DNA of 63,175 bases, the filler included, from Dimorphilus gyrociliatus (lineage: Eukaryota > Animalia > Annelida), in the NCBI GenBank assembly GCA_904063045.1. It is 4 parts of 4 records of this genome, joined end to end, with 100 filler letters (N's around TTAATTAATTAA, not from the genome) between each part and the next. Parts side by side here need not be neighbours in the genome. Positions count along the whole stretch, not along the records: positions 1 to 17,771 come from CAJFCJ010000211.1; 3 more parts are not named here. One strand, given 5' to 3'. The translations under genes and the position numbers were made by a program. Below, in pieces: positions 1 through 17,771 of this stretch. Positions within the stretch are counted from its first letter, which is position 1; each line of letters starts with the position of its first letter. The notes below the pieces were generated by a model that was not told the DNA's origin, searched no databases, and saw nothing but the letters and a program-made list of their open reading frames with translations.

Positions 1-3000
1 GCGTTCTCCATTTGTATCCGGAAATTTGAAATTTTTCTATTTTGTTACATTTCTTTAATAATCTTGCCAAAGAATTGGCGGCACACTCTTTCAATCTGGA
101 AGAAAGTATGGTTATATGCTTTAAAGAGGATGAAGAACTGATAAGCGACGAATGAATATCGAAAAACCAGTCTTCAATATTGTTATTATTGTTCAAACAA
201 ACTTCTTCAATCTTGGTGCATTTTTGTAATAATATTTGAAGATCGTTTAAAGCAATATGACTCAAGTTACAGTCGTTCAAGTTGATTTTTCTTAATGTAT
301 CTGACGATGGATAAAGTGCTCTGCAAACAGCTGAAAACCCCCTTCCCATATCTCTGTTCAAACTTAAATCAATTTCTTCTATCCTACATGCAAGTAAAAA
401 ATCTTTTAGATTTTGTGAACATTGATCTGTACTTAATTCACAATTTGATAAAATTACACTTTTCAAAATGTTGCTTGATTTGCAAAGTCCTTTGCAGATT
501 TCAGACAATTGATTACTCATATTTTTCAGTCCATAAAAAGAGACATTCTCAATGATTGAATGCTTAGATAATAGGCCAGCGAAATTTGTAGCGTCCCTCT
601 TGGTTAACGACTCATTATACAACAATCTCACATTTTCAGTTGATTTTTTACGCTTCAAAATAACATAAAGTGGTTGACGTCTATATTTTGACGTCTTTTC
701 AAGTTCAAATACATTGTCTGGTACATTTTTAAAAAAAAAATTATAACGTTTAGCTGAAGCTATAAAACTACTAATTTCATCGGGAATCTGCTCGTTTTCA
801 CTGTTCTCTGATTGATTATCATTCATTTGCTTCTCCCTGAAAAATGATGATTGTGAGATAAGTAAATTGTTGACAGTGTTAATAACTGGAAGATCCTTTT
901 GAAATGATAATTCCCTATTTTTATTTGATTTCCAATAAGTTCTATAATCTTTAGCAGTAGGAGTTGAATATATACTATCCTTTCTCCACTTTGAACTATT
1001 CTCTGTTGAATATTCAAATTCTCTCTTCTTAATTTCCCTAACCCTATTATCGCTCTTCGGGCAATTGTCAAGAGGTTTTTGCGCCTTAAGCCCTGTCATC
1101 TTTTTGCCATATGCTTGTTTTTTAATATAATCCTGTGTTGAGAGATGTATTATAGGTGACGTCAATGATTTTGTTACACTGGGTAAACGTATTGGACCAT
1201 CTTCGCTCGCTTTGTTATCTTTACTTTTTAAGGGGAAAAGAGAAATTGAGGAATGTACAGTCTCAATCCTGAAGGAGATGTACTCGACCGAACTTTGTCT
1301 CCTATCAGTATCGTCTCTGGAGGTAGAAGATCTATTGTCAAAACTGTAATTGTTATCTGGCGCCATCTGTGGGAGAGTATGACTCATTTTCTGCCTCTTT
1401 TCAAGTTTCTGGTCAGTATTGAGTTTAGAATGTTCATTACTAGTTGGAAAATTAGTCCTAGCTTTTGGGATGGTTGTCGAAATCTTTTTCTTCAGTTTTC
1501 TTTCCCTCATTTGTTTTTCATCAACAGAGCATAAAATACACAAGTTTTGTACTTGCAGCTGAAGCGAATCTTCATCATTCTTGTTGGGATGAAGCTCATC
1601 GAACTTTTCAAAGAATTTTGAAAATAGACTTTTTATCCTATTGTTTAATTTGCTAGATGTTTGGTCATAAGTTAGAGATAGGATACCAGCATTGAATGAT
1701 AATCTTCGAAGGCAGTGGATGCATGTTGTATGCTGATGAGAAACTATTGACGAAATATTCTTGGTTATTGAATATTTCAAGCAAACTGAACAGATTAAAC
1801 CGCAATTGCTGTCGTTTATATCAGAGTACAAAAAATCGTTTCTTGTAAAATTATCGGAAAGAGATGCGAAGGAAGGAAAGATATTTTCGTAATTAAACTT
1901 CTTTTCTTCTCCCACACAAACTTCCTGTAAGGAGGAACATTCTTTCAACATCTTTTCAAGTTCCATAATTTGTCGTTTCAAGAGATGACAGTTGTAGAAA
2001 TCCAACTTTAAAAGACTTTTAGCTGAAGTTCTTAATCCAGAAATAATTCTATCAAATCCTAGTTTAATTCTTAAGTTGAATGCTAGATTTAGTTCGTGAA
2101 TAGAGCAACAATTTTCTAATAGGCTACCTAAATCTTCGCCATTTTTACAACTTAAATTACAATTGTAGAAACTAAGTTTTGTCAGAGAATAACGAGAAAA
2201 TGAAGATTTCAATGCAGAACAAATACCACCAAAGCCGAGTTCCATTTGCTTATTCAAATTTAAAGTCAACTCTTTCAAAGAGCTTTCTTTCAAAAGATCA
2301 GCCAATTGATCGCATTGTTCTTTTCTCAGTTCGCATGAAGAAAAATTTAAATTTTGAAGAAATGAACAAGACGATTTCAAACCTTGGCAGATATCTTCAA
2401 AGCCTTCTGCAATTTTTTTATTATAACTCAAGTCAACATTCTGTAAAATTTGGCATTCTTTGAAAAAATGACCAAGTTCTTTACTCTGTTCAGCATTCAG
2501 ATTACAATGGGATAGATTGATTTTTGTTAAAGTATATTTGGAAAATTGTAAATCATGGCAAATATTTTTTAATCCACCTTTTGTAAAATTATTCCAACTT
2601 AGATTAATCTCTTTTAATGAAATGCAATCTTTCAGCATGTTTTTTAAATCTTCAGTCTCTTCTTCTGCCGTAATGCAAGTGTGTAAATCTAATTCGGTAA
2701 TATTCTTTGATATTTTTGAAATTCCATGCGAAATACATGACAATCCACCTTTCATTCCAACATTTAAACCGAGTAGAAGTTTTGTCAATACCTTACAATT
2801 CTCTAAGAGTTCCCCTAAGTATTTGCATTTCATTTTGTTCATATCGCAAGCCGATAAATTCAATTTTAAAAGGCTGTTGACCGACTTCTGAAGTCCTGAA
2901 CAAATATTTTTCAAACCAGTGTCAGTCATTTGAATATTAAAGCTCAAATCAACTTGCTGCAATGATGAACAATTCTCTAAAAGATGTGCCAAATTTTTAC

Positions 3001-6000
3001 ATTTCGTCGAGTGCAAATTACACGAGCATAGATTTAAAATTGAAAGGTTTTTTCCACTTGAAATTAGACCTTCACAAATTTGTGTAAAACCGTCAAACTC
3101 CATATTTGGATTTAAACTTAGGTTTATTTCTAAAATTGATTTGCATCTCTTTAACAAACAACCCAATATCTTACTCTGATCTTCGTCTAGATTACATCCG
3201 CAAAAGTTGATTTTCTGGAGACTGTCACACGATTTTTTTAATCCTGCGCATATTTTTTCAAACCCTTTAAGCATATTTGAATTGAAGCTGAAATCAATAT
3301 CCTTCAATAAAATGCAGTTCTTTAGCGAATCGCCTAATAAACAACTACTTTCTTGATTCATATTACAACCGGAAAAGTGTAATTTTACGAGATTTGTTAA
3401 TGACGGTTCTAGTCCGTAAGTGATGTTTTGAAATCCAGCGCTTATATTCGTATTTAGGCTAAAATCACCTTCTTTTAGACTTGTGCAGTTTTTTAGTAGG
3501 ACTCCAAGATGTTCGCTTTTCTCACCAAACAAATGACAGGCAATAACATTGACTTTCACCAGATTATTAAACAAAGTACTTTCGGATGGACTGTTCATTT
3601 TGAAAGGATCTTGTTCCTTTGCAGTATTTACTAAGGTTAAACAGTGTATCTCTGTAAATTGGGAGAAAAAGTTTTCAAACACGTCTCCACTTACATTCAC
3701 AAAAGTTACTTTTCTAATACAATTTAAATATTCTTTATTGAGATTTTTTAGTAGATTTTTCGAGTTTGTCGTCAGATTTTGAAATGTTATTGTCATTGAT
3801 TCCAAAGATTTCTGCTGAGAGACAAGTTCTGGAAGGAAGAGTGTTGTTTTTCCCATTTCACAAATATCCAATTCTTGTCTTTTGTTAAGAAAATAGTGAA
3901 TAATTCTTTTAAAAGTTATCTTCAAGTCGTTTTCATTAATGATATTATAGATAGATAAATCTAGGTCATCAATTTCAATTAATCCGTTCCTAAGTGCCGT
4001 TAAAAGGCTTATCAAGAGTGTTTTTTGGGATGTTGGATGAGTAGGCTTGCAATTTCTAGCATTTAAAACAATCTGGTAAGAATTGTTTGAACATTTGAAG
4101 AGTGATACTGTATTCTTTTCATTTTGCGGGCCGGTTCGAAGGTCATTTTTGGATATATATTTGTGGCACTCTTCGAAGACATCCACGGACGCATTGACAA
4201 TGATGCAATTTATAAGGGAAATATGTATATTTTTATCTTGTTGCCTCTTGCTTTTAATCGAGGAAAAAAGCTTTTTATAATTTCCCTTCTGAATAGGCCA
4301 ATTAAAGATATTTAATGCATTTAAATGGGGGAACATATCCAGGAAAAATGATAGGTCTAATGTACTGAAGGAGTGTATTTCAATCATCATAATGCTTTGG
4401 TTTGAGGAAGAAACGCTCGTGCGATAAAGTTCAACAAGTGACTTGTGGCTGACAGGAGAATAGATAATATTAATTTTATCGGTTAATGTTATCTCTCTTT
4501 GAACAATTTGACAACCGTAAAAGAATTTAAATTGAGTTCTATCCATATTCAAATATTCAAATTTAGGTAAATTGAATAGTTTTAAACCGAGATATATTTT
4601 ATTTTCTAGTTTAACTGTTCGATTTATTTCCAGGTTTTGTAAACGTTCGCAATGATTGATTAATGAATCTAAAACGTATCTGCCATCGAGGAATTGGCAT
4701 TCTTTAAAAATTAACTTTTCCCATTTGCATCCATGCATTTGTGCCAAAATGTTAAAAATTGAATTTGAGAATATCTGCTTTTCAAATGTTTTACTACTTT
4801 CACTGTTCTCACTTTTAATGTATTCAAATATTATTTCACTGCAATCAAAGCATCCACTTAGGTACATTGACCTTTTCATAAATGTTTTGTACATTTCCAG
4901 CGACTTTTCCCTTATAAAGAATAAAATGTTGAAGATTTTAATATCGGAATTGTCTGCCAACATTTTAAAATCATTATTAATTTCCGATGTGTTCAATAGG
5001 TAAACTGCGGCGAAAAATTCTTGAAATGAATAATGGAAGAGTCTAATATCGCGATATCCGGGGGTATTAGTTTCAATGTCTTCAATTAGTCCGGAAAGGT
5101 AGTGACGTATTCTTTTTATTTTATCATCGGAGTTTGACAATGTAATTCTATTTTTGCACAAATTTTCAAAGCACAACTTACCAAAATCATTGTTCAGGAA
5201 TTGCTCACCTGCTCGATAATCCGATTGATTTGTATTTTGCTGGAGAACAAGCTTGATCATACGATGATAGATTGTGAAGACATTCTCATTATCCAGATCC
5301 TTCTCCTTCTGCCAAACATGGAAGAGAATCATTGCGAAGAGTGGCGATTTACATAATTTGTATAATCTCCCCTTAACCCTCAGAAACAGTAGGAATCGAT
5401 CAGTTGATATTTCGTCAATGAAACAGTTCAAGAAGAAATCCCTTAAACTTTCTTCAGTTAGGCCTGTTAGCTCGAAAGTTGCAAATGGTACACTTTTATT
5501 CCTTATGTGGTTGGCTTTCCATTTTCTCGACCATATTACAGTAGGAATTGCGGTGGTTGTTTTTTCAATAAATTCATTTAAAGGGTGATCTTTACACTCA
5601 AACTCATCGGCTCCGTCTAAAAAGAGGATTATCCTATCTTTATAAGATTCAATAACGCATTGAATTATATCCGTTGTTATATAACTAATATTGTTAAAGT
5701 TTTGTTTCTTAATCTCTTCGTATAAATTATTTCCAGTGTCAACATTGCATAAAAAGATTACTAGGATTAATTTCTTATTTTCCGGATCGTAATTTCCATT
5801 CGCCCATTGATAAAGTAAATATTTACATTGAACAGTTTTACCCATTCCGGGTTCACCTTGAATAATTATTTTATTAAAATTCCCCTGTTCAAACAATTTA
5901 AAAAATTCTAAATATTCAACTTTCGAATTGACAAGATTATCTTCCAGAATGTTATTGCTTACTACTTCGCAAAGTTTAACGTTCGATACTATATGATTAA

Positions 6001-6421
6001 TTGGAACGTTTCTCGACTCACGGAATAAAGGAAAGAAAGGAATCAATTGAATATCGTTCTTTCTGCATTCTTTGGTTGACTCTATAATCCTTTTCCACAC
6101 TTGTCCTTCATCACCTAACGACGATGCTTCAACAGAAATAAGCTGCTTGTTCAACTTCTTTAGTAAGACTTTAACTTTGTTCTCGCCTAAATTGTTTAAT
6201 TTTTCCAACAATTTCTCAACAGCTGTTCTCTTCCGTCCGTGTTGCTCATTATAACCCCGCAATAACTTGCTGTATTCATCAGAATCAATGAACATGGAAT
6301 TGTATAAATTCCATACAGCGTCCCGGAAGCATTGTTCATTATCGTAGAAAAATGTTTTAATGTTGATGGAAGACCACGGAAATTCAACCTTTGATTTCAG
6401 ATCAATTTCAGGAATCACCAT
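1..6421 (-). CDS. Single-exon NLR-like protein (>=2140 aa, 3' end runs off the window): CARD/death-fold-like N-terminus, NACHT, RI-type LRR array, vestigial RING, coiled-coil/low-complexity linker, second RI-type LRR array
   Basis: I read the minus frame from ATG 6421 to base 1 without meeting a stop; the ORF track probably omits it because it has no stop inside the window. Motifs: Walker A GEPGMGKT (~5850), Walker B IILFLDGADE (~5610), CKSPLF, winged-helix FHYSFQEFFAAVYL (~5010), and many LxxLxLSxN/CxL repeats (~3600-1900 and ~560-1). Confidence 0.93.
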   Translation of the reverse strand, partial: MVIPEIDLKSKVEFPWSSINIKTFFYDNEQCFRDAVWNLYNSMFIDSDEYSKLLRGYNEQHGRKRTAVEKLLEKLNNLGENKVKVLLKKLNKQLISVEASSLGDEGQVWKRIIESTKECRKNDIQLIPFFPLFRESRNVPINHIVSNVKLCEVVSNNILEDNLVNSKVEYLEFFKLFEQGNFNKIIIQGEPGMGKTVQCKYLLYQWANGNYDPENKKLILVIFLCNVDTGNNLYEEIKKQNFNNISYITTDIIQCVIESYKDRIILFLDGADEFECKDHPLNEFIEKTTTAIPTVIWSRKWKANHIRNKSVPFATFELTGLTEESLRDFFLNCFIDEISTDRFLLFLRVKGRLYKLCKSPLFAMILFHVWQKEKDLDNENVFTIYHRMIKLVLQQNTNQSDYRAGEQFLNNDFGKLCFENLCKNRITLSNSDDKIKRIRHYLSGLIEDIETNTPGYRDIRLFHYSFQEFFAAVYLLNTSEINNDFKMLADNSDIKIFNILFFIREKSLEMYKTFMKRSMYLSGCFDCSEIIFEYIKSENSESSKTFEKQIFSNSIFNILAQMHGCKWEKLIFKECQFLDGRYVLDSLINHCERLQNLEINRTVKLENKIYLGLKLFNLPKFEYLNMDRTQFKFFYGCQIVQREITLTDKINIIYSPVSHKSLVELYRTSVSSSNQSIMMIEIHSFSTLDLSFFLDMFPHLNALNIFNWPIQKGNYKKLFSSIKSKRQQDKNIHISLINCIIVNASVDVFEECHKYISKNDLRTGPQNEKNTVSLFKCSNNSYQIVLNARNCKPTHPTSQKTLLISLLTALRNGLIEIDDLDLSIYNIINENDLKITFKRIIHYFLNKRQELDICEMGKTTLFLPELVSQQKSLESMTITFQNLTTNSKNLLKNLNKEYLNCIRKVTFVNVSGDVFENFFSQFTEIHCLTLVNTAKEQDPFKMNSPSESTLFNNLVKVNVIACHLFGEKSEHLGVLLKNCTSLKEGDFSLNTNISAGFQNITYGLEPSLTNLVKLHFSGCNMNQESSCLLGDSLKNCILLKDIDFSFNSNMLKGFEKICAGLKKSCDSLQKINFCGCNLDEDQSKILGCLLKRCKSILEINLSLNPNMEFDGFTQICEGLISSGKNLSILNLCSCNLHSTKCKNLAHLLENCSSLQQVDLSFNIQMTDTGLKNICSGLQKSVNSLLKLNLSACDMNKMKCKYLGELLENCKVLTKLLLGLNVGMKGGLSCISHGISKISKNITELDLHTCITAEEETEDLKNMLKDCISLKEINLSWNNFTKGGLKNICHDLQFSKYTLTKINLSHCNLNAEQSKELGHFFKECQILQNVDLSYNKKIAEGFEDICQGLKSSCSFLQNLNFSSCELRKEQCDQLADLLKESSLKELTLNLNKQMELGFGGICSALKSSFSRYSLTKLSFYNCNLSCKNGEDLGSLLENCCSIHELNLAFNLRIKLGFDRIISGLRTSAKSLLKLDFYNCHLLKRQIMELEKMLKECSSLQEVCVGEEKKFNYENIFPSFASLSDNFTRNDFLYSDINDSNCGLICSVCLKYSITKNISSIVSHQHTTCIHCLRRLSFNAGILSLTYDQTSSKLNNRIKSLFSKFFEKFDELHPNKNDEDSLQLQVQNLCILCSVDEKQMRERKLKKKISTTIPKARTNFPTSNEHSKLNTDQKLEKRQKMSHTLPQMAPDNNYSFDNRSSTSRDDTDRRQSSVEYISFRIETVHSSISLFPLKSKDNKASEDGPIRLPSVTKSLTSPIIHLSTQDYIKKQAYGKKMTGLKAQKPLDNCPKSDNRVREIKKREFEYSTENSSKWRKDSIYSTPTAKDYRTYWKSNKNRELSFQKDLPVINTVNNLLISQSSFFREKQMNDNQSENSENEQIPDEISSFIASAKRYNFFFKNVPDNVFELEKTSKYRRQPLYVILKRKKSTENVRLLYNESLTKRDATNFAGLLSKHSIIENVSFYGLKNMSNQLSEICKGLCKSSNILKSVILSNCELSTDQCSQNLKDFLLACRIEEIDLSLNRDMGRGFSAVCRALYPSSDTLRKINLNDCNLSHIALNDLQILLQKCTKIEEVCLNNNNNIEDWFFDIHSSLISSSSSLKHITILSSRLKECAANSLARLLKKCNKIEKFQISGYKWRT

Positions 6422-7631
6422 ATTTTGATATTGTTGCCTTTTTGTGTTAGAATTAATAGAATCTCAGTAGATATATTTTAAAAGTATAGAATACAATTTG
6501 AAAGTAAATCCATTACTTTAGATATATTCCATGATCTTATAAATAATCAAATATTGCAGAACAAGAGAACTACGGTTCTGTGAGACGCAACTAAATAAAC
6601 TATCCCAAGTGACAGTCTAAATTGACAATTTATATTGATTAGGGAATTTTCTAGTTGTATTTTCATATTACTATAGAATAGTTTGAAATTGGCTTAAACA
6701 CTGCTTGAAATATATCGACCCCCACTCGTCTCCCTTATTCTTAGCATATCTTAAAGGATTTTTTTTGTGCAGCATATTTATCTCAAAATTATTTCTAATC
6801 CTAGTCAAAAACACTATTTTCTACTCCAGGTCACATGGTTTTGAACAATTTTTCTTACAAAGCACTTTATTGATCCTCCCTATGGCACAACACCCAAGTT
6901 TGATCACCAAGTATATATATATATTGAATGACTATTGTCCCGGCTCGAATAATAAGTTGAAAATTACTGTTTAAGCGATTTACCATTGATTTGTCAGTAG
7001 TTGTTCCAACTTGTAGAATGCAATTTAGAGCAACAATCCAATATTTTGTATTTTTGCAGAATATCTTATTGTTCCAGCTGAAACTATTTCTCTTATTTTC
7101 CTATGATGCATGATAATGAATTAATTCAAAAAAGACTGATTTCTACTTAGGAGGATCTCCTCTATGGAGGAAATAGAAAAGTTTAGGTACATCATGGAAT
7201 CGGAAATAGTTCTCTATCGATATCAGAAATCTATAATGACAGAGTAACGTTGTTGATTTCATAAAAGAAATCTGTGTAGGGTTGAAGGACATTTTAAAAA
7301 TATTTGCATAATGCTGCATGAAATGTAGGCCTATTTTACTGAATTTGTCTGTACTTTCAACAAATGATCGTATTTTAACCTAAAACAGCAAGAATATATT
7401 CTACGCAATTTCAACGGAATATGAATGATTGTGTAATATTCATATTTGGGGATTATTTTTTGTATGAATGGTTTCAACTCAAAAAAATTGTTTGTTCAAC
7501 TAAAATTCATTCATGAAGAAAAGTCTATCTATCTTGGATAAATAATAACTGATCAAAGAGTTTAATTATGCTAGTTTACAAAGAAGAACCTTTCATTCCT
7601 ATTTAATACTAGATTTAAGCTTCTGGTTGTT

Positions 7632-9300
7632 TTAGTATGGTGATATACAAAATATCTTTGGCATTCTTCCTGTAAAAATATTGAAATTTTTATATGAATA
7701 AGTCGTCCATATTGGATTATTTGAATGAAACAAAAATTTTACATCAAAGAAAATATTATCTATTGAAATTTCCCTTTTAAAAGTTAAAGAGTTGTTGTGG
7801 CAATAGGAAATTCCAATGACAATATGCTTTAAAAGTTTTAAGCAATGGTAGCTTCTGGATAAATCTTTTAATGCATAAAGACCTTTAAACTGTCTATAAT
7901 GCATCTTTTGAATAAGATAATGTTCTTGGGAATGGAGGAAGAACTTTAAAACTGATAAAAAAAAGTTTCCATTATTCAATAAGTTGTTGTCTATTTTGGA
8001 CAAAAAAAGGAAAGATATATTGATAGAAAGAGAGAGAGAGGGAAAATGATTCAAACCTTTTGAATTCAAGTGTTTTTCTCCGATTTTCAATAATTTTACT
8101 AATATCATCAAAAGAATATAAAAATGGATTAAGTACAGAATTAATTGGCAATAATAAAGCGACTATTAGTGAGTACGTGTCATTACTAAAATAAACATTC
8201 ATTATTGCTGATAAAGTTGCTAAAAGGAGAGAGACAGTTAAAATTGAACAATTTTTGAAAAGGGTTAAAAACAGACGAACCGAGTATTGAAATTGGAAAC
8301 CAACAAATCATATTTGTTAGAATGACTAGAAATACAATTTTAAAGATTTTTTGTTGCCTTATTGTTGGTGTTTAATGATGGAATTTTGTAAATGATTTGT
8401 TAACATTAATTAAAATTATTATATATGTAAAATGCCAATGAGATTATTAATTAGAAATGTTATAATAAACATTATGAAAGAATACAGCCAGCCATCAGTC
8501 TTTTCACTTCTTATGTGTATACTAAAACAAATTGGCGTTGCCATGGTATCAATCTAACAAGAATTCAAAAAAATCTATATTGTGTTTGTTTGTTTTTGTG
8601 TTTTCATTTCTCTTTTTACAATTTGATTCCATTTCAAGAATGTTTATAGATTTTTCTCTTTTGAAGAAATGATAGCAAACCATTCGGAAATAAAACTTAT
8701 ACCTTCCATAGCAATTTGGTTCTCTTTTTTTTTGTTTTTGAAAAAGGCTTTTAGTTTTGATTTTGAAATTAATTATTAAATTTTATTGAAAACCTTCTAG
8801 TCGATTTGAACATTTGACGTTCGATTTTAGTTTGATGAATTCGCTAAAAGAAAGAAAACAACCGGAATTGTTAAAGGTTTTTAATTATGTTCAATTTTTT
8901 TTGACCTTTAAATTGACGCTATTGGTCGGCAATCTTTGAAATTCCTACTCATTTCATCGCAAGAAAGATAGTAATTGAATGTGTTATTTGCTTCTTCCTT
9001 TGCCTTCTCTTCAAAAATTGAATATTGAAATCCAAATTGTTGACACATTAAATCGTGTTCGTGTTTGTACTCAATTCTAAAATTTATCCATTTATTATGA
9101 AGGAGACCTTGAAGATAACCATCAGAACTGTGTAGAGTATGACCCACTGAAGGCTTTAGGGTTATATTATGATCTAAATTGACGTATTTATAGGAAATTT
9201 CCTCTGCAATAGATAAAAGATGTTTTTTTTTAAAGAAACATCAACAAAATAGCTAGAAAAATGTTTACCGCTTCCTTGGCAGGATGGCAATATAAGAAGA
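7632..9300 (-). pseudogene. Internally deleted GRL101-like GPCR relic: SRCR-like exon, then TM5-TM7 and kinase-like tail exons
   Basis: SRCR-like DGYLQG...LMCQQFGF...LSCD...DC (8908-9150). TM5 GWLYSFIMF (~8480), TM6 LTNMICWFPISIL (~8300), TM7 LLPINSVLNPFLYS (~8130). In-frame stops and frameshifts between TM5 and TM6. No LDLa, LRR or TM1-4 seen between 8900 and 8570. Confidence 0.75.
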
Positions 9301-9643
9301 GATTTTTGAATGCTTGGTCTATGCTATTTGCAATTCACAAACGTATTCTTCTTCACTACGCAAAAAACCATTGTTTCAGCCTATAAGAACACATACAATT
9401 TTTTATTCTTATTCTCTGTTATTTGATATAATATATTGAAATATTTCTTGAAAATGAATAGGCCTATAAAACTTTCTGTTTTCTTTGGAATGGAAATATT
9501 ATTGCAGTATTTGGACTGTTTGAAGAAAGGAACTCGGTTGCAGACCATTTTGCAGATGTCGGATTTGTTTACATTCACAAAAAGTGGACTACCAATTATA
9601 AAAGTTTTAGAAGTTAGGAAATAACTAACACGAAACGAATACA

Positions 9644-10516
9644 TTGCTTGAATATCAATGTATTCAATATTATTTTCTTTTCAGTTGGATTATCTTTATG
9701 GAAAAGTGTGATATGTCTGACATAAACTGTATTTTTCTACCTGTAAGCAAACTATCTATATTGTCTTTACAAGTTTTTTCATCCAACTTTCAAGAGATGA
9801 TGACATATTGTTTGGAAAAAGAGGTTAATCTACCATTTGGAATTTGCCAAAAAATTTTTTCATTTTTAAATAATTATTTACTTGGTTTAAACAATAAACA
9901 ATTAATGTGTTGGAAACAAATGCAAACACATTTCAACAGATTTTCTTTATATGGAAATCACCTTGAAAATGTTGACAGTTTATCATTCCTCAAAGATCAA
10001 TCAATAAATTATTTGGAATTGAGATGCTTTAAAAATAGCTTTTTCCACCAATTATTTAATTTTATAGACATTGAAGAAATTAAAACTCTTATCCTAACTG
10101 ATTGTCAAGGAATTAGAAGTATATCTGAATCTCTTCAATCATTGCAACACCTAAAAGTTTTTAATGTCAGTGGAACATATTTTAGGAGTTCTGATTTTGA
10201 GATATTGTGCAATAATTCTATTTTATTAGAAGAGCTAAACATCTCTTCTACAAGTGTTACAAAATTAGATTGTATTGTTAATTTGAAGAATTTAAAAATC
10301 TTTCAAATGATGATGTACGATTCATATTTAAATTATGAAGAATTTTATTATCTAATCAAATTAAAGAATTTGGAAAAAATTGAAATACAACTAAATACAT
10401 TTCTTACATTTTCTTGTTATCTCTTTAGTTCTTTTCAGAAATTCAGAAAGTTTATTCATAATAAAAAAAAAATTAGAAATTATCAACCTAATTTGCTCTA
10501 TCCCTTCCAATGGTAA
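9644..10516 (+). CDS. ZYG11/ZER1-like LRR protein, probably decaying (continuation to ~11250 is interrupted by stops)
   Basis: N-terminal SKLSILSLQVF...LPFGICQKIFSFL pattern resembles the ZYG11/ZER1 family, followed by LRRs (LKVFNVSGT, LEELNISST, LKNLKIF). Downstream and upstream frames are broken. Confidence 0.6.
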   Translation: MLEYQCIQYYFLFSWIIFMEKCDMSDINCIFLPVSKLSILSLQVFSSNFQEMMTYCLEKEVNLPFGICQKIFSFLNNYLLGLNNKQLMCWKQMQTHFNRFSLYGNHLENVDSLSFLKDQSINYLELRCFKNSFFHQLFNFIDIEEIKTLILTDCQGIRSISESLQSLQHLKVFNVSGTYFRSSDFEILCNNSILLEELNISSTSVTKLDCIVNLKNLKIFQMMMYDSYLNYEEFYYLIKLKNLEKIEIQLNTFLTFSCYLFSSFQKFRKFIHNKKKIRNYQPNLLYPFQW

Positions 10517-11409
10517 AATATATTATAGAGAAGTGTCAAAGGCAAATTCATTGACTTTGATATAAATGAGATAAATGTAAGTAAACACTACTTTATTTTA
10601 TTGCTATTGCTATTATTTTGTTATTCTATACTATTAGAAGAACTTTTTTAATGATTTAAAAAATTCTTACCAAAGTATACAACTATTTGAAAAATATTCC
10701 TGATAAGAATTTATTTTTGCAATTGCAAAAAAGGATTAGGTTACTGAAAAAGAAATCTCCAAAACTCCTAAGTAAATCCTACTACAGAGTAAGTGATATT
10801 CATAAATGAAGTTCAATCGATAGTATTCTAGGCTTGTTTTTTGAAATATTCTCATTTGGATAACAGATTGCGTGTAATGAAATGGATTGATTATTTGACG
10901 AAATGTGTGCCGTTGATCAAGAGAAAAATATCTATTGTGAAATGTTTGTCAAATATTTTTAAAAACTTTGAGATTGTTTAAGAAATCTAATCAACAAAAT
11001 TTCGAGAATGTTATTCTTTTATGCCTCAGATATATCCAAGCTTTTGATAATAGATTACACAATAATAGGACATTATGGAATTTTTATTCCCAATTTCTTT
11101 CTTTAATCATTGCAAATTGGAAGTCTTTGAAATGCGTAAAAACATTTTTTTTGAATTTTTATTCAAAATTCAAATCTCAATATTCATTTCAGATGATACT
11201 TGCAAAAGATGCCATAACATTGTAGAGAAGAGATTATCCTATTTGTACAAACTTTAATATATTGTAATCAATTTTTTTAAAAGTCACTAAGATTTGACAG
11301 TAATGACAAAATAATAATTTTTTTGGATACGACAGAAAACGCCCACAAATGGAACTTGGACTGTGGACCATCAAGTTTCAGTAACACATATTCAGTATTT
11401 TTTATAAAT

Positions 11410-12130
11410 ATACAGTAACCTGTATAAAATTGGGACACCCTAAAGGCTCAACTTTTAATTAATGGCCACGAATGTTTGTTCCCACAAACATAGTTTTTTT
11501 TGTCTAAATTTATATAGACAAAAAGTAATGTCTATGTAATTTTGCCACACTTTATAATTATTGAAACATATACTTGACATCTGATTTGGGGATGGCACCA
11601 GCATCGTTTAGCAATACTCTACAATACAATCACCCAGAACAGGAGAATAGTGGTAATCAAAACGAGACTTACAGAATAAGACATCGGCAGGGTGAAAAGA
11701 ATTATAAAGAAATTGAAACAAATTAAGGAATAAGAAGTAGATGTTAGCATAGCAACATATCAGAGGGAGCAGAAAGCAAAATCTCAGATAAAAAAGAGTG
11801 ACACACAGACATGATCTCACAACCAACAATTGCAAAAGAAGAAATATGTATTGCCTTAAAATGATCAGTGTTAATCTAGACTAGTTTAAAGTAATTTTCA
11901 TCATCAAGGCTAGATTCTCGCTGAGTGGCCCTGATGACTTTAGGACATAGACAAATCATGGTGAAAAGGTGACGAGGGGTGGAATAATGGTTTGGGGACT
12001 CATAAACTTCAATGGAATTTAAGAAATATGGAGTGTAAAGAAAAAACTTAATGTTGAAAATTATAGCTGTTTTATTATGGAAGATGTCTTTCCTGTAATA
12101 GAAGATGTATTAAAAACAATTCTATAAAAA
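11410..12130 (+). mobile_element. Tc1-like DNA transposon remnant
   Basis: TA-CAGT...GGGACACCC TIR-like start near 11410. The degenerate transposase reads FSLSGPDD...GGIMVWG...LNVENY (~11915-12110), the Tc1 GG.VMVWG motif. Confidence 0.6.
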
Positions 12131-12708
12131 CTAGCCTAAATTCTATTTGAAAGAAATTTATACAGTCACAATAATAAGAAATTATAAAAAGGGATAAAAA
12201 GTTTTGATCATGTGAATTTTTCGACGACCAAAAAATGTTTATGGTCTGGATTATTTGACAAGCTATTAAGTAATTTTAACTATACTTTATCTATACTTTA
12301 TCTTCTCCAGTTTGATGAGTAAAATATTTTTTCTTACTCTTTTATTGAAAATAATTCATTTTAATCTTCAAAGAAGATAAGAATTATTAAGAATTCTAAA
12401 TAATCTTTGAAAAATAACTTGTTGACCTGGTTTTGGCATTTTAATAATAGTACATTCAAACTAAAAAAAGCACTTGAACGCTGATAATTAGTAATTGTCA
12501 TAGAGACAACTAAGATTATTACTGGTATGAAGTAGAAGAGAATGAAGAATAAATCTTATCCTGGTTTCTTTATTACTCGCAACATCTACTATAAAACTTC
12601 TACATCATTGTAAATACAATTATTTAATCTCTATCAACTGTAATAAGTGTTCAACCAAAGAAACTAAGAAATGAATGAATCATTAAAAGCAGAAAAACTG
12701 AACTGTCT

Positions 12709-14118
12709 TTACACCTCCCTTAATTTTTTAAGTAGCTCATTCTTGACTAACAGAGTTTCTGTAACTACTGATAGGTCATTCAAATTACCACTATTTCTTA
12801 TATCCAGTTTAAACAAAAAAGGACAAACTGCTAACAAAAAGATTAGATCTCTCGTTTGACTGTCACTTAAGAAGCATCCATAACAAGTAACTGTGAATAG
12901 AGTATTTTTTGAAGATACTAACCCATTACAAATTCTCTCAAGTCCATCGCCCATTCTTGTATTGAAAGACAAATTTATGAGCTGAATTTTATAACATTTT
13001 GCCAGAAGGTATGAAATAGAATTACACTGTTGTTCAGTTAGATTACAATTATCAAAAGCTAATATTTTTAATGTATCTGATGACTGAACAAGTCCATTGC
13101 AGATGAATTCCAACCCATACCCCATTTCTTTATTACCACTTAAATTGACTTCTTGTAATTGTGATAAATTCATAAAAAAATTTCCCAATTCATTACATTG
13201 TATAGGAGAAAAATTACAATATCCAAAATTAAGATGTGTTAAACTGTTTGAAGATAATTTTAAACTGCAACATATTTTATCCAGTATATCATCTTTTAAA
13301 ATATTACCACTCAAGTTAATCATTTCTAAATACTGTAATTGTGCTAATAAATCAACAATAAACACCCATTGTTCCAAATTTGCAATATTAATTTGACTTA
13401 AATTTAAGCCTCTTAAAGAAGTTGATTTTCTCAACCATTGACAAATACTTAGTACTCCATCATTACTAATTCCTTTATTTTGACTTAAATCAACAACTTC
13501 TAGTTTAGAAAATTTTTCCATGATCTTTCCAAAAGCTATCCATTCCTCTCCACTAAACTGACAATTGGATAAATACAAACTTTTTAGATTATTTGACGAT
13601 GGAATAAGGCTATTCATAATTATTATTAATCCATTTGACATTCCAACATTACCGCTGAAATTTAGTTGTTTAATGGAAGAAAATTTTTCCAGTGTATTTC
13701 CGATTATTTTCCAAGAATTCTCATCTATTTGGCAATTCGTAAATATTGCACCAGACAGCATTGCTGAACCTTTATTTATTTTATCGCATAAAACAAGAAA
13801 ATTTTCACTTGAAAATTTAATGTCAAGTTTTAAAATATCTGATGGAATGTCTTTATGATCTTTACACAATTTACTAATAAATGAAATATTCTCAACAGAT
13901 TCATCAGCAATACTAAATTTTATGTTTAAAATTTGCTCCTCAGTTAATTTACATTTTTCTGAACATAGATTGCATGTTATATCATACTTATCTAAAGGCA
14001 AAGATTGGCAACATTGCAAACAATATACATGTTTGCAATGTTGTACACTTGATGCTCCACAGCCCATAATAATATTTCTTTCTTCAAGTGATATCAACAA
14101 GTTTTTTAACACACACAC
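12709..14118 (-). CDS. RING-finger plus RI-type LRR protein (start either at MGCGASS ATG 14067 or via an upstream exon spliced to the AG at ~14121)
   Basis: Open 469-aa frame. CKHVYCLQC...ITCNLC is the C-x-H-x2-C-x2-C...C-x2-C part of a RING-HC. About 10 LRRs follow (LNFSGN, LYLSNC, VDLSQN, VNLSGN, INLSFN). Confidence 0.85.
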   Translation of the reverse strand: MCVLKNLLISLEERNIIMGCGASSVQHCKHVYCLQCCQSLPLDKYDITCNLCSEKCKLTEEQILNIKFSIADESVENISFISKLCKDHKDIPSDILKLDIKFSSENFLVLCDKINKGSAMLSGAIFTNCQIDENSWKIIGNTLEKFSSIKQLNFSGNVGMSNGLIIIMNSLIPSSNNLKSLYLSNCQFSGEEWIAFGKIMEKFSKLEVVDLSQNKGISNDGVLSICQWLRKSTSLRGLNLSQINIANLEQWVFIVDLLAQLQYLEMINLSGNILKDDILDKICCSLKLSSNSLTHLNFGYCNFSPIQCNELGNFFMNLSQLQEVNLSGNKEMGYGLEFICNGLVQSSDTLKILAFDNCNLTEQQCNSISYLLAKCYKIQLINLSFNTRMGDGLERICNGLVSSKNTLFTVTCYGCFLSDSQTRDLIFLLAVCPFLFKLDIRNSGNLNDLSVVTETLLVKNELLKKLREV

Positions 14119-14121
14119 ACC

Positions 14122-14144
14122 TATATATATATATATATATATAT
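14122..14144. repeat. (TA)n microsatellite next to a short (CA)n
   Basis: Seen directly in the sequence. Confidence 0.9.
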
Positions 14145-14902
14145 TGCAGAATGGTTATCTGAAATCTTATCTTTGCAATTTGCAAAAAAAACTAAGCTAA
14201 GGTAGTTGTGCTATGAATGAATAATGTAAAATGAATAATATTAATGTCACCACTGAGTAAACTTGTACATTAATTTAGGAAAAGGGAGATGTGTATAGGG
14301 ACCAGAGAGGAGAGAAGAAAGACAATAACTTATGTCAAAGATATATTTCCTTCCTCTTTTAAAAATTCTTAACTCTGTGATATCTTATCAGAGTGATCCC
14401 CCTCAATGTAGATTAAATTAAATTTGAAAGTCTTGTTTGATCAATACTTTACAAGATAAACTATGTAGTCCAACTACTAATAGAGGATTGTTGTATCAGA
14501 TGAAAAAATAGAGCACTTATACTCATTTTTTGGATTTAATGTCAATGGCAATCTCCTGTCAGATTGAAATAGTTGGAAAAGTTTCTAAAAATAGTAATTT
14601 GTTATTGAGGTGTTGAAGACTGGAGATGGAAAAATTCGGCCAGGCATTAGGCCTAACATCTTAAGATGTTCATTCACTAAAACAAAAGATGTTGTTTGCT
14701 ATGGAAACGAAGAATAAATCTTGAATAAGATATCCCTTTACTTCTGCTCTTTTCCGATCAGAGTTCACTGAAATTTCTCTTCTCTCTATCCAAGATAAAA
14801 GATGAATAATATTTTAAGAGAAAATATCTAATAATAGTGAAAATAGATAAATACAAGTGTAATATATTTTAATGACGTAATTCTGTAGCAGATTTAAACT
14901 AC

Positions 14903-15205
14903 TCAATAATGGTGTACACTAATTGAATGTGGATTATATAAACGAATACGAACTGATAGGCCAATGTATTCGACTGATAGCCCAGGAACTGTCCTATTCC
15001 GAAAATAATCAAATTCCTTTCCATGAAATGTTGAGAGGTAAAGATCTCTAAAAGTTCTTCTAGACAATCTTATTTTGCAAGATTGTCCAAAAAGCCCTGT
15101 AAAGCAATCGCACTCTGCTCTACAATTTGACTTTTGATGTTGAATTGCACCCCAGCAGCAACTATTTTTCTTTGAACATTCATTACAAGACAAATGATTC
15201 TGCAA
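14903..15205 (-). pseudogene. Cys-rich EGF-like exon fragment of a decayed gene
   Basis: CSKKNSCCWG...CRAECDCFTGLFGQSCK fits CxCxxGxxGxxC. Neighbouring frames contain stops. Confidence 0.4.
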
Positions 15206-16159
15206 AATTGCAGTTTTTGCAGTTTAAAAAAATTCGTATAGAGATTATGATAATCTGTTGAAGAGTGTTTGACTCATATTTACCTGATTTTTCTTTATAT
15301 TTATACAATAAAGCCAAAGTTTCAATATGATAAGCCTTTAAAATTGCTAGAATAGCAAAGGGCCATAATTTCAATTGAATAATGTTCGGGAGCTTTAATT
15401 ATTTCACTTTTCAACCAATGCACTCCATTTTGCAATACCTAAATTGGTAGTTTGGTAATTGCCAAGTAGATAAGGATAACAATCGTTCTTCTTTGCCCTA
15501 ACCAAAAAATGCACAATTCATTAAAATGTTTCCAATAATAAATTTAATAAGTGGTTACGCTAGATGGCGCCAGTATAATTTTGTTTTTAATTTAATAATT
15601 AATAACATTTAATTCACAAAAAGTATGAATGAAAGTTAAATATATAAGATAGTACTCGACTGATAGGATATAAAAACAAATTCTATATCTTTTACAAAAT
15701 TATTGAATGAGCTTCTGTCCATTATGTCAACAAAGGACTAGGAACAAAGAGAAATTTTCTGCAAGTAATTGCTACTACCTAAATGCTGACATCATGGAAA
15801 GTAAAAGAAACAAAGAAGACAATTACTACGTGGAATTTTACTGTGTCAATCATTTAAATAATTTCATTGTGTAAGGTTAGACATTTACTTTGTTAATGGT
15901 ATTGAGTAGTTAGTAAATTTCAATAATTGGATATTTCTTTATTGATCTTATCAACAAGTACATTATTCTGTTTTTGTTGATTGAATGAAAAGATACTTTT
16001 AATTAATCCTACACTTGTTGTTGTTCTAAAGTGTTTCTTTGTTAAATATTCATAAATATCGTATTTTTCACGATAATAGATAATTTTTAATGAATATTAT
16101 AGAAAAAATACTATTCAGAATGGTAATAACAACTTTGAAATTGTATGATGGACAATAAA

Positions 16160-17355
16160 ATGAACTTTATTGTCATTTCAATTTTTTTAATTAATTTTTT
16201 CTTTCAAAATATACAAGGTATTGAAAATATTTTCTTTTTTTTTGAAATGTTTACCAGTTTTTCTATTCTATTTTATTCATTAATTTAGGAGATGATTGCC
16301 CTCATGGTTGGATAAGATATCTAGACAGTTGTATTGGAAAATTTACAGATAATCTGAATTCAGCTCTAATTTTAAACGCTTTGTGTAGTTTAAAAGGAGG
16401 AACTCCAATTAAAATTGATTCTCCAAAGAAGCGCCAGTCGGAAATACTATTTTATAGGCCTAAGGAGAATAGGAACAATAGGAAACTGTTCCAAAGATTT
16501 TACATGGCATGATAGTACACTGTTAAATTTTCATAATTTTGAAAATTCAGCAAATACATTTGTTAATAATCAAGATTTTGTTGCAATACGTAAAAGTAAT
16601 GGAATATGGTCAACAGTTACAGATTTTAATTCCGACACTGGATATTTATGTGAAATGAACAAAGGTTTGTTTTATGAAAAATTATAGATGTTTTTGTTCT
16701 TTAAAAAAATATCACTTTAATTTATTCCACTATTTTGAATTATATTTGTCTACCTTATTGGTATTTGGTAGACAATTATAGATATACTGGACAGTACAAA
16801 GTCAAGTTTATTTCTAGAGATTCTTGTCTTAAAGTATGATTTAATTGTATTTTGATACTAGTCATGAGCAGCAATTTTAACACTTCTTTCTTCCTATCCA
16901 TAGCAATGCATAGATGGAACATACGGTATCTGTTCTAGTGTCTCTTGGGATCATGCCAAGGCAAGAGATAAATTGTATGCAGATGACTTTCCAAAATTAA
17001 AATTCAATAGTTACTTAGAATTTATCAATTTGAAGGTGAATCTGGTACTTGTACAAGGCAAATTGACCTGTTGATCAACTTCCAGATTCTAGTTTTACAG
17101 CTTCAAATTCGGATAGTTCGTCAAAACCTTATGAAGGCAGATGTGGAAATTTTAAGCATGGCAATCATCCAGGGACATTTTCGTTTAAAATTGTTAATTC
17201 AAAACAATGGTTTCAAGTAGATCTTTTAAATCTCTATAATATAACTGGCTATCATATTTTGGGTGGAAAAGTGAATGCTAAACGTACCTTAGAGCATCAT
17301 TACATGTTGTATAGTTTAAATTGTTTAGACTTTTCATGGTATCGCCAAAAGGAGA
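16160..17355 (+). pseudogene. Secreted C-type lectin + F5/8 type C (discoidin) gene, frameshifted and cut by a gypsy fragment
   Basis: Signal exon MNFIVISIFLINFFFQNIQ (16160-16217) with a GT..AG intron. CTL DDCPHGWIRYLDSC is joined by a frameshift to YFIGL...FTWHD...YLCE. F5/8C reads LPDSSFTAS...PYEGR...QWFQVDL...ITG (~17080-17350). Confidence 0.8.
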
Positions 17356-17357
17356 AG

Positions 17358-17590
17358 CAGTAGTAACCACAAAATGCTACAAAACTTAATAGAGTACTTG
17401 CAAACATTGGTACTTTAGCATCTTTTATCTTTTAAATCTTTTCTGGATCAGTTTCGATACCATTCTGTGTAATTATATGACCAAGAAATTGTACTGATTC
17501 TTGTAGAAATGCGCATTTGCTCAGTTTGATTCTAAAGTCTTTTTCTTTGATTCTTTCATTAATTTTTGAAAATCTTACTTAATGTACATA
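17358..17590 (-). mobile_element. Ty3/gypsy reverse-transcriptase C-terminal fragment
   Basis: Translation FRIKLSKCAFLQESVQFLGHIITQNGIETDPEKI*...FCGYY matches the KC.F....V.FLGH.I...GI..DPEK motif. Contains a stop. Confidence 0.85.
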
Positions 17591-17771
17591 AAGAGCTATA
17601 GTAAAAGTAAACAAATTAAATCTTTTTTTTTTTCATAAAAACTGGTAGATATAAGGAAATCTTCTGGTATACTTTGTTGTATTGTAATTGTAGAAATTTC
17701 TGACTCTTCACAACAGAAATTGTCCTTTCCAATCATTTACCAATTTGTAAAAGTACTGGTCAAATACAGTT

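Follow-up and report, generated by a model that had tools for sequence, protein, structure and literature searches.

The genome of the annelid Dimorphilus gyrociliatus (assembly GCA_904063045.1) encodes an NLR-type receptor that does not end after its leucine-rich repeats (LRRs), and instead continues in the same frame through a RING-like Cys/His domain and a long linker into a second LRR array. The gene lies at the left end of the window, a stretch of 63,175 nt made of four joined parts, the first of which (positions 1 to 17,771) comes from record CAJFCJ010000211.1. This is a real NLR layout, neither an artefact nor a relic. In the reading that we consider probable, a single-exon gene codes for a large NLRC-like receptor, which consists of a CARD-like domain, a NACHT domain, a helical middle region, about 19 LRRs (array 1), a RING-like finger, a linker, a short conserved segment and a further set of LRRs (array 2). 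Going by sequence comparison, the gene is read as a member of a lineage-restricted NLRC-like subfamily with a C-terminal RING-LRR module, which is probably similar to ubiquitin ligases (E3s).

The sequence is AT-rich (24-36% GC in 1-kb windows), and its longest feature in a six-frame scan is an open reading frame (ORF) of 2154 codons on the minus strand, which runs from nt 6463 to nt 2 and is truncated by the sequence edge. The first methionine is codon 15 (Met15, nt 6421). The six-frame scan, the identity of independent contigs and the collinearity with a 2182-aa homologue, P0002, all point to a single open reading frame from Met15 to the edge (nt 2..6421, minus strand), with the 3' end missing. 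From the Cys/His stretch to array 2, the linker contains no in-frame stops, compared to 8 and 37 in two other frames; judging from base composition, the chance of 245 stop-free linker codons is about 8e-9. The preliminary description of this DNA, made from the sequence alone, had an NLR whose frame stays open beyond the first LRRs, across a RING-like Cys/His domain and a linker, and reaches another LRR array; the 2154-codon frame bears this out. Two of the strings that it quoted are present as given, LICSVC at aa 1556-1561 (nt 1798-1781) and SHQHTTCIHC at aa 1575-1584 (nt 1741-1712). The motif quoted for array 2 (DMGRGFSAVC...) is also found, from aa 2038 onward, but it lies at nt 352-263, outside the interval of nt 500-1900 in which the feature had been placed.

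The same description had proposed a check for a collapsed stop or a misassembly between the two arrays, and this has been possible with contigs from other sources. A 6538-nt contig from a different study, filed under another organism label, matches nt 1-6000 without a single difference or indel and extends 376 nt past the left edge. None of the contigs appeared to be human. Contigs from two further runs cover nt 631-1681, 1673-1908 and 731-1569, and so reach piece by piece from the RING-like domain across the linker to where array 2 starts. Across four runs, the sole variant in 6 kb is a T>A change at nt 2224 in run X4, which would replace Ile1414 of array 1 with Phe. Because independent contigs are identical over 6 kb, misassembly is ruled out. 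An apparent joint at 823/1779, along with loose ends in X2, was disregarded, since both come from 19-21-nt matches of unrelated contigs.

The layout is not confined to this locus. The homologue P0002 comes from Logan assemblies, where a word search with the first 960 residues brought it up; three runs encode it identically. Its contigs have 24% GC, compared to 30% here, and no synteny is detectable between the flanks of the two loci; P0002 thus belongs to a different organism. A single BLASTP alignment joins aa 20-2153 of the ORF to aa 1-2058 of P0002 at 32% identity, with the same domain order. Broken down by region, the identity is 41% in the NACHT domain, 39% in array 1, 35% in the Cys/His domain, 31% in the linker (with many gaps), 38.5% in the segment that precedes array 2 and 40% in array 2 itself. 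P0002 runs about 125 residues past the point where the ORF is cut by the edge, and these hold two more of the 57-aa super-units of the arrays and a tail. Since a protein that is only 32% identical keeps the same order of parts, the layout is old and has been maintained.

A third copy is represented by a locus that is found in the same organism as P0002. When a profile of the Cys/His domain was run against 1.84 billion representative proteins, the matches were P0002 and P0007 only, the latter being a 422-aa piece with LRRs followed by the same Cys/His domain. The locus that holds P0007 (L005:21-5007; also L006 and L007) is collinear with the gene, from the region after NACHT through array 1, the Cys/His domain and the linker to array 2. 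Three runs have this locus in identical form. Its coding sequence switches between frames (3, 1, 3, 1) and is divided among seven called ORFs, so that it is probably either a decayed copy (a pseudogene) or a gene with short introns. About 2.6 kb downstream of this copy lies a gene for a G-protein-coupled receptor (GPCR) of the 7tm_1 family.

The runs that contain P0002 also contain P0001 (L001:7334-12571), a canonical NACHT-LRR protein of 1745 aa. It shares 28% identity with the gene product over the N-terminal and NACHT part and the LRRs, which are built from the same 57-aa super-unit, and it stops directly after its only LRR array, lacking the Cys/His domain, the linker and array 2. As P0001 and P0002 share runs, the canonical and the extended layouts coexist in one organism. 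The module therefore marks a subfamily and is not an accident of one locus, because P0002 and L005 keep it while the canonical P0001 lacks it. When the C-terminal module (aa 1540-2154) was used alone, the word search gave no relative, and within the full-length query this part found only P0001, by way of its LRRs. The subfamily is very rare in the public data searched, where it is represented by one intact homologue and one decayed copy, both from the other organism.

As far as the end of array 1, the protein has the parts of an NLR. The NACHT nucleoside triphosphatase domain (aa 199-350; nt 5414..5869, minus strand) matches PF05729 with an E-value of 8.9e-11 and 42.3 bits, above the gathering score (cut-off 26.7). 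It has a Walker A motif, GEPGMGKT, at aa 203-210 and a Walker B-like stretch, IILFLDGADE, at aa 277-287 (LFLDGADE, aa 280-287), and this part resembles NACHT clusters of invertebrate animals. Array 1 (aa 962-1511; nt 1931..3580, minus strand) was delimited with a hidden Markov model (HMM) of the super-unit, in which each unit of 57 aa corresponds to two LRRs of the ribonuclease inhibitor (RNI) type. It comprises 9.5 super-units, or about 19 RNI-type LRRs, with HMM domain scores of 15-73 bits, and aligns with the LRRs of P0001 and P0002. With a NACHT domain that has Walker motifs and an LRR array C-terminal to it, the protein belongs to the NACHT-LRR family.

Upstream of the NACHT domain, a CARD-like death-fold domain is predicted at ORF aa about 27-109 (nt 6137..6385, minus strand). 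An AlphaFold model of the N-terminus, made with three homologues, has a six-helix core with a predicted local distance difference test score (pLDDT) of 76-89 over model residues 20-90. In a wide VIA-align search of 48,161 chains, the top structural matches of this model are almost all CARD or other death-fold domains. The best rows are the NLRC4 CARD (Z 8.4, root mean square deviation 2.3 over 76 aa) and the CARDs of caspase-1 and NOD1 (both Z 8.3), a Z near 8 being a middling value for helical bundles. It is the uniformity of the match list, and not the Z-score alone, that makes the CARD assignment credible. Pfam and PDB sequence searches gave no family match for the N-terminus, and Foldseek gave no match for the model at E <= 0.001. 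On its modelled fold, then, the protein would carry the N-terminal death-fold domain of the CARD-bearing NLRC subtype, and the receptor resembles the NLRC type.

The part that sets this protein apart begins with the Cys/His domain, a candidate zinc finger of the RING-like C2H2C4 type (nt 1529..1792, minus strand). The candidate ligands, between aa 1558 and 1645, are C1558, C1561, H1576, H1578, C1581 and C1584, followed after a 57-aa insert by C1642 and C1645. The pattern C-x2-C-x13/14-H-x-H-x2-C-x2-C-x47..57-C-x2-C is kept in the gene product, in P0002 and in P0007. Among the three proteins, 8 of the 11 Cys/His positions are invariant, as opposed to 8 of the 109 other residues (Fisher p 2e-6). 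A domain with all eight putative zinc ligands preserved in this way is not vestigial, contrary to what had been supposed from the sequence alone. The preliminary description was right to see a RING-like Cys/His domain here, but it counted 14 residues from the first CxxC to the Ser where there are 13. It had also taken the third Cys to have turned into Ser, whereas that position is variable (S/N/E) and the adjacent H1576 is the invariant residue, whose counterpart in the LNX2 RING is the third Cys. Nor is the last CxxC missing; it is the conserved pair C1642/C1645 (nt 1540-1529), which stands 57 residues after C1584 in the conserved context NLCxxCS.

Several lines of comparison lead from this pattern to RING domains. 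The Cys/His stretch of P0002 matches seven Pfam RING families with E-values of 0.0035-0.8, all sub-threshold and with alignments that start at profile position 1 and end near position 31 of 40. The stretch of P0007 matches one Pfam RING family, also below threshold. In profile searches of the PDB, 6 of the 8 weak matches are RINGs, headed by LNX2 (E 0.1) and followed by TRIM39, TRIM2 and UHRF1. The ten best named neighbours in a language-model search are all RING clusters, with similarities of 0.83-0.87, which by the tool's own rating count as a lead only. The RING of MDM2 is a known case of a C2H2C4 ligand set. The residue before the second ligand (V/V/I) and the one four residues after the sixth (L/W/L) are hydrophobic in the three proteins; in RING domains, these two positions are the usual contacts with ubiquitin-conjugating (E2) enzymes.

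Several observations weigh against the reading of this gene as a receptor with a RING-like module. In the Pfam search, the P0002 stretch scores 10-18 bits where the RING cut-offs are 21-31, no member of the family reaches a gathering score, and the gene's own Cys/His stretch has no Pfam RING match at E up to 10. An AlphaFold model of the Cys/His domain from three sequences has a pLDDT of 53, is all-helical and contains no usable cross-brace. The insert between the sixth and seventh ligands is 47-57 aa long (47 in P0007, 57 in the gene product), and this is at or beyond the canonical spacing of 4-48 in the RING consensus used here, C-x2-C-x(9-39)-C-x(1-3)-H-x(2-3)-C-x2-C-x(4-48)-C-x2-C. The third ligand, a Cys in that consensus, is His here, and the Pro that usually follows the seventh ligand is absent. 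At the level of the whole gene, the sequence runs compared are assembled contigs, none of them on record as RNA, and we infer one transcript and one polypeptide solely from the maintained frame. An E3 activity, like any role for array 2, is purely conjectural.

Taken with these observations, a RING fold for the Cys/His domain is likely, whereas a ubiquitin ligase activity, to go by the sequence, is possible and somewhat doubtful. Because the threshold of the curated profiles is not reached, the domain should not yet be filed as a member of the RING-finger family, and it plausibly works like a RING.

Between the Cys/His domain and array 2 lies a basic, Ser/Thr-rich linker of about 240 aa (aa 1651-1893; nt 785..1513, minus strand), which from its composition is probably disordered. 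Disorder-promoting residues make up 72% of it and its net charge is +16; the linker of P0002 is similar in these respects (70%, +18), and is shorter and poorly alignable. No credible Pfam family was found in the linker. It is followed by a conserved segment (aa 1894-1970; nt 554..784, minus strand), recognised in the alignment with P0002 by the motifs SFIxSAKxxNFF and KYR, and the identity of 38.5% in this segment extends over aa 1901-1965 with few gaps. Array 2 (aa 1971-2141; nt 2..553, minus strand) has three super-units of 57 aa and the start of a fourth, with HMM scores of 41-67 bits, before it is cut by the edge. Judging by the homologue P0002, the full array 2 would have about 10 LRRs.

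Together with what is established for NLRs and RING E3s, this arrangement suggests how the receptor might work. The Cys/His domain would bind two zinc ions in a RING-type cross-brace and serve as an E3-type output or as a regulatory module, while array 1 would keep the NACHT domain inactive as long as no ligand is bound. On ligand binding, nucleotide-dependent oligomerisation would bring the CARD-like domains together, for the recruitment of an adaptor, and would also cluster the RING-like domains, and many E3s are active when their RINGs are clustered. With its length, the basic linker could allow array 2 to reach a ligand or a substrate as a second binding arm. In its strongest form, this would be a self-contained sensor-ligase, in which an oligomerising STAND/NLR protein activates its own RING E3 and the tethered array 2 presents a substrate or a microbial ligand to be ubiquitinated. 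That version is tentative and on the unlikely side; if true, it would mean that an animal NLR signals by ubiquitin directly, and not only through death-fold adaptors.

An alternative is that the Cys/His domain is a purely structural zinc knuckle, which acts as a cap, a hinge or a dimerisation element, and that array 2 is a second sensor or an autoinhibitory lid. In its favour are the sub-threshold matches to RING models, which extend over the first six ligands only, the long, helical-looking insert and the absent Pro after the seventh ligand, both untypical of a RING, and the AlphaFold model without a cross-brace. On the other hand, the order and spacing of the ligands up to the sixth align residue for residue with the RINGs of LNX2 and TRIM proteins, and hydrophobic residues are kept at the two usual E2-contact positions in three proteins. 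We regard a purely structural role as unlikely.

Less probable still is the production of two separate proteins from this locus, a canonical NLR and a RING-LRR protein, by splicing, internal initiation or alternative polyadenylation. The canonical relative P0001 does end directly after its LRRs, no RNA evidence on record speaks for a joint transcript, and a neighbouring gene (see below) has the order of a Cys/His patch and then LRRs in free-standing form. Yet the gene product and P0002, at just 32% identity, both lack a stop between the two parts, and the frame has been kept through a poorly conserved linker in DNA of 24-30% GC, which implies that ribosomes read through it. These considerations make two products improbable, and favour the one-chain receptor. 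A chimeric assembly, or a gene that died recently and has by chance kept its frame open, might be suggested by the absent 3' end, the fast turnover of NLR families and the existence of the decayed copy L005, but it is very hard to reconcile with independent contigs identical over 6 kb, a linker so unlikely to be open by chance and a P0002 that is intact in three runs.

The neighbouring gene is separate from the NLR (nt 12709..14067, minus strand) and was delimited by ORF scan and the unit HMM. It encodes 452 aa, and its start, MGCGAS..., has what we take to be a myristoylation/palmitoylation-like sequence. The motif EMGYGLEFICNGL..., by which the preliminary description had identified this gene, lies in the minus-strand frame 14154-12712. 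The protein has a Cys/His patch, C-x-H-x2-C-x2-C-x12-C-x2-C, and after it about six super-units whose LRRs are of the type seen in the NLR. The patch resembles the distal three quarters of a RING only; Pfam finds no RING in this protein, and no upstream exon with the first CxxC was seen. Just upstream of the start, at about nt 14105-14130, there is a (TA)n run.

It had been proposed that array 2 closely resembles this neighbour, and that an NLR has fused with a RING-LRR gene of its kind. Special kinship between the two is not apparent: in BLASTP comparisons, array 2 is 31% identical to the LRRs of the neighbour (E 3e-21) and 33-34% identical to array 1 (E 1e-20), while array 1 and the neighbour share 30-35%. 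The mean identity of individual units is likewise 0.31 for array 2 and the neighbour, 0.29 for array 2 and array 1, and 0.32 for array 1 and the neighbour. The 30-mer of array 2 that had been quoted as evidence matches the neighbour at 13/30 positions, the gene's own array 1 at 14/30 and array 2 of P0002 at 15/30; as the counts are similar everywhere, the resemblance is that of the LRR consensus. The Cys/His patches of the two genes do not appear homologous either, for the profile of the NLR family scores -1.9 bits on the neighbour. On the sequences compared, neither array 2 nor the Cys/His domain thus seems to have its nearest kin in the neighbour when set against other LRRs or RINGs.

A phylogeny of array 1, array 2 and the neighbour, which had been suggested as a test of the fusion, was carried out with the super-units and does not place array 2 with either of the others. 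The units of array 2 pair with those of P0002 array 2 (support 99/95 and 94/82), and the deeper branching is without support. Since only these ortholog pairs are supported, array 2 cannot be assigned an origin in array 1 or in a neighbour-like gene. Fusion with a gene of the neighbour's type is thus not demonstrated. Fusion with some RING-LRR gene is a plausible origin, given the common order of a Cys/His domain and then LRRs, but the word and profile searches gave no relative of the module that stands by itself. If the fusion happened, it predates the split of this gene and P0002. Nothing supports the label of an integrated decoy, which had also been attached to the protein.

The surroundings of the NLR are densely filled with other features. 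Two overlapping open pieces at nt 7635-8307 (minus strand) are among them and resemble the end of a rhodopsin-type GPCR, from transmembrane helix 6 to 7 (NSVLNPFLYSF); the frame changes between them, suggesting an intron or a frameshift, and neither piece has a Pfam match. A 295-codon ORF on the plus strand (nt 9629-10513) encodes LRRs of a different class (LRR_4, E 3.7e-6; weakly Zer-1-like), which are unrelated to the arrays of the NLR. Further along, nt 16246-17360 (plus strand) appear exon-like, with a C-type lectin domain (PF00059, 22.8 bits, cut-off 22.6) and an F5/8 type C match below its cut-off (21.9 bits), and nt 14906-15223 (minus strand), also exon-like, have a Cys pattern resembling that of epidermal growth factor. 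The domains in these last two regions are of the secreted or adhesion type found in animals.

In the accepted picture, an animal NLR has a single LRR sensor at its end and signals by way of the death-fold domain at its N-terminus, and the ubiquitin ligases that act on it are distinct proteins. If an NLR has a conserved RING-like domain of its own and a second LRR array, this would add a new mode of output or regulation to the family. As novel domain combinations are common in the NLR expansions of invertebrates, the surprise is a moderate one. A search of one paper library gave no description of a NACHT-RING architecture, and the sponge and cnidarian NLR surveys consulted make no mention of RING, an absence that is no proof of novelty. 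The family is apparently undescribed.

The protein shares a CARD-like fold, a NACHT domain and an RNI-type LRR array with NLRC-type receptors such as NOD1, NLRC4 and the coral 'NLRC3-like' proteins, and its best named sequence relatives are the NLRC3-like proteins of Pocillopora (24-25% identity). However, the canonical NLRC members stop after one LRR array, while here about 770 more residues follow by the count of the homologue, about 640 of which are in the window. Compared with RINGs of the LNX and TRIM proteins and with the C2H2C4 type of MDM2, the Cys/His domain has the same ligand order (C C H H C C C C) and, up to the sixth ligand, aligns with LNX2; it differs in the insert of 47-57 aa before the last CxxC, in the lack of Pro after the seventh ligand and in its sub-threshold Pfam scores.

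The combination of an LRR binding arm and a ligase domain in one chain, which serves here as a working model of the C-terminal module, is known from LRR-RING E3s of the LRSAM1 type and from bacterial LRR-NEL ligases. No sequence relationship with these was found, the order is reversed in that the RING-like domain precedes the LRRs, and the module is attached to an NLR. Extra domains are known from other NLRs as well: plant NLRs have integrated domains, and the NLR-C proteins of teleosts carry a C-terminal B30.2, a domain borrowed from an E3-ligase (TRIM) family. In the present case there is no evidence of a paired helper or a decoy, and the extra part is not B30.2; it is made up of a RING-like finger and a second LRR array. 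An NLR of this kind would be an animal counterpart to the extra-domain NLRs of plants and fish.

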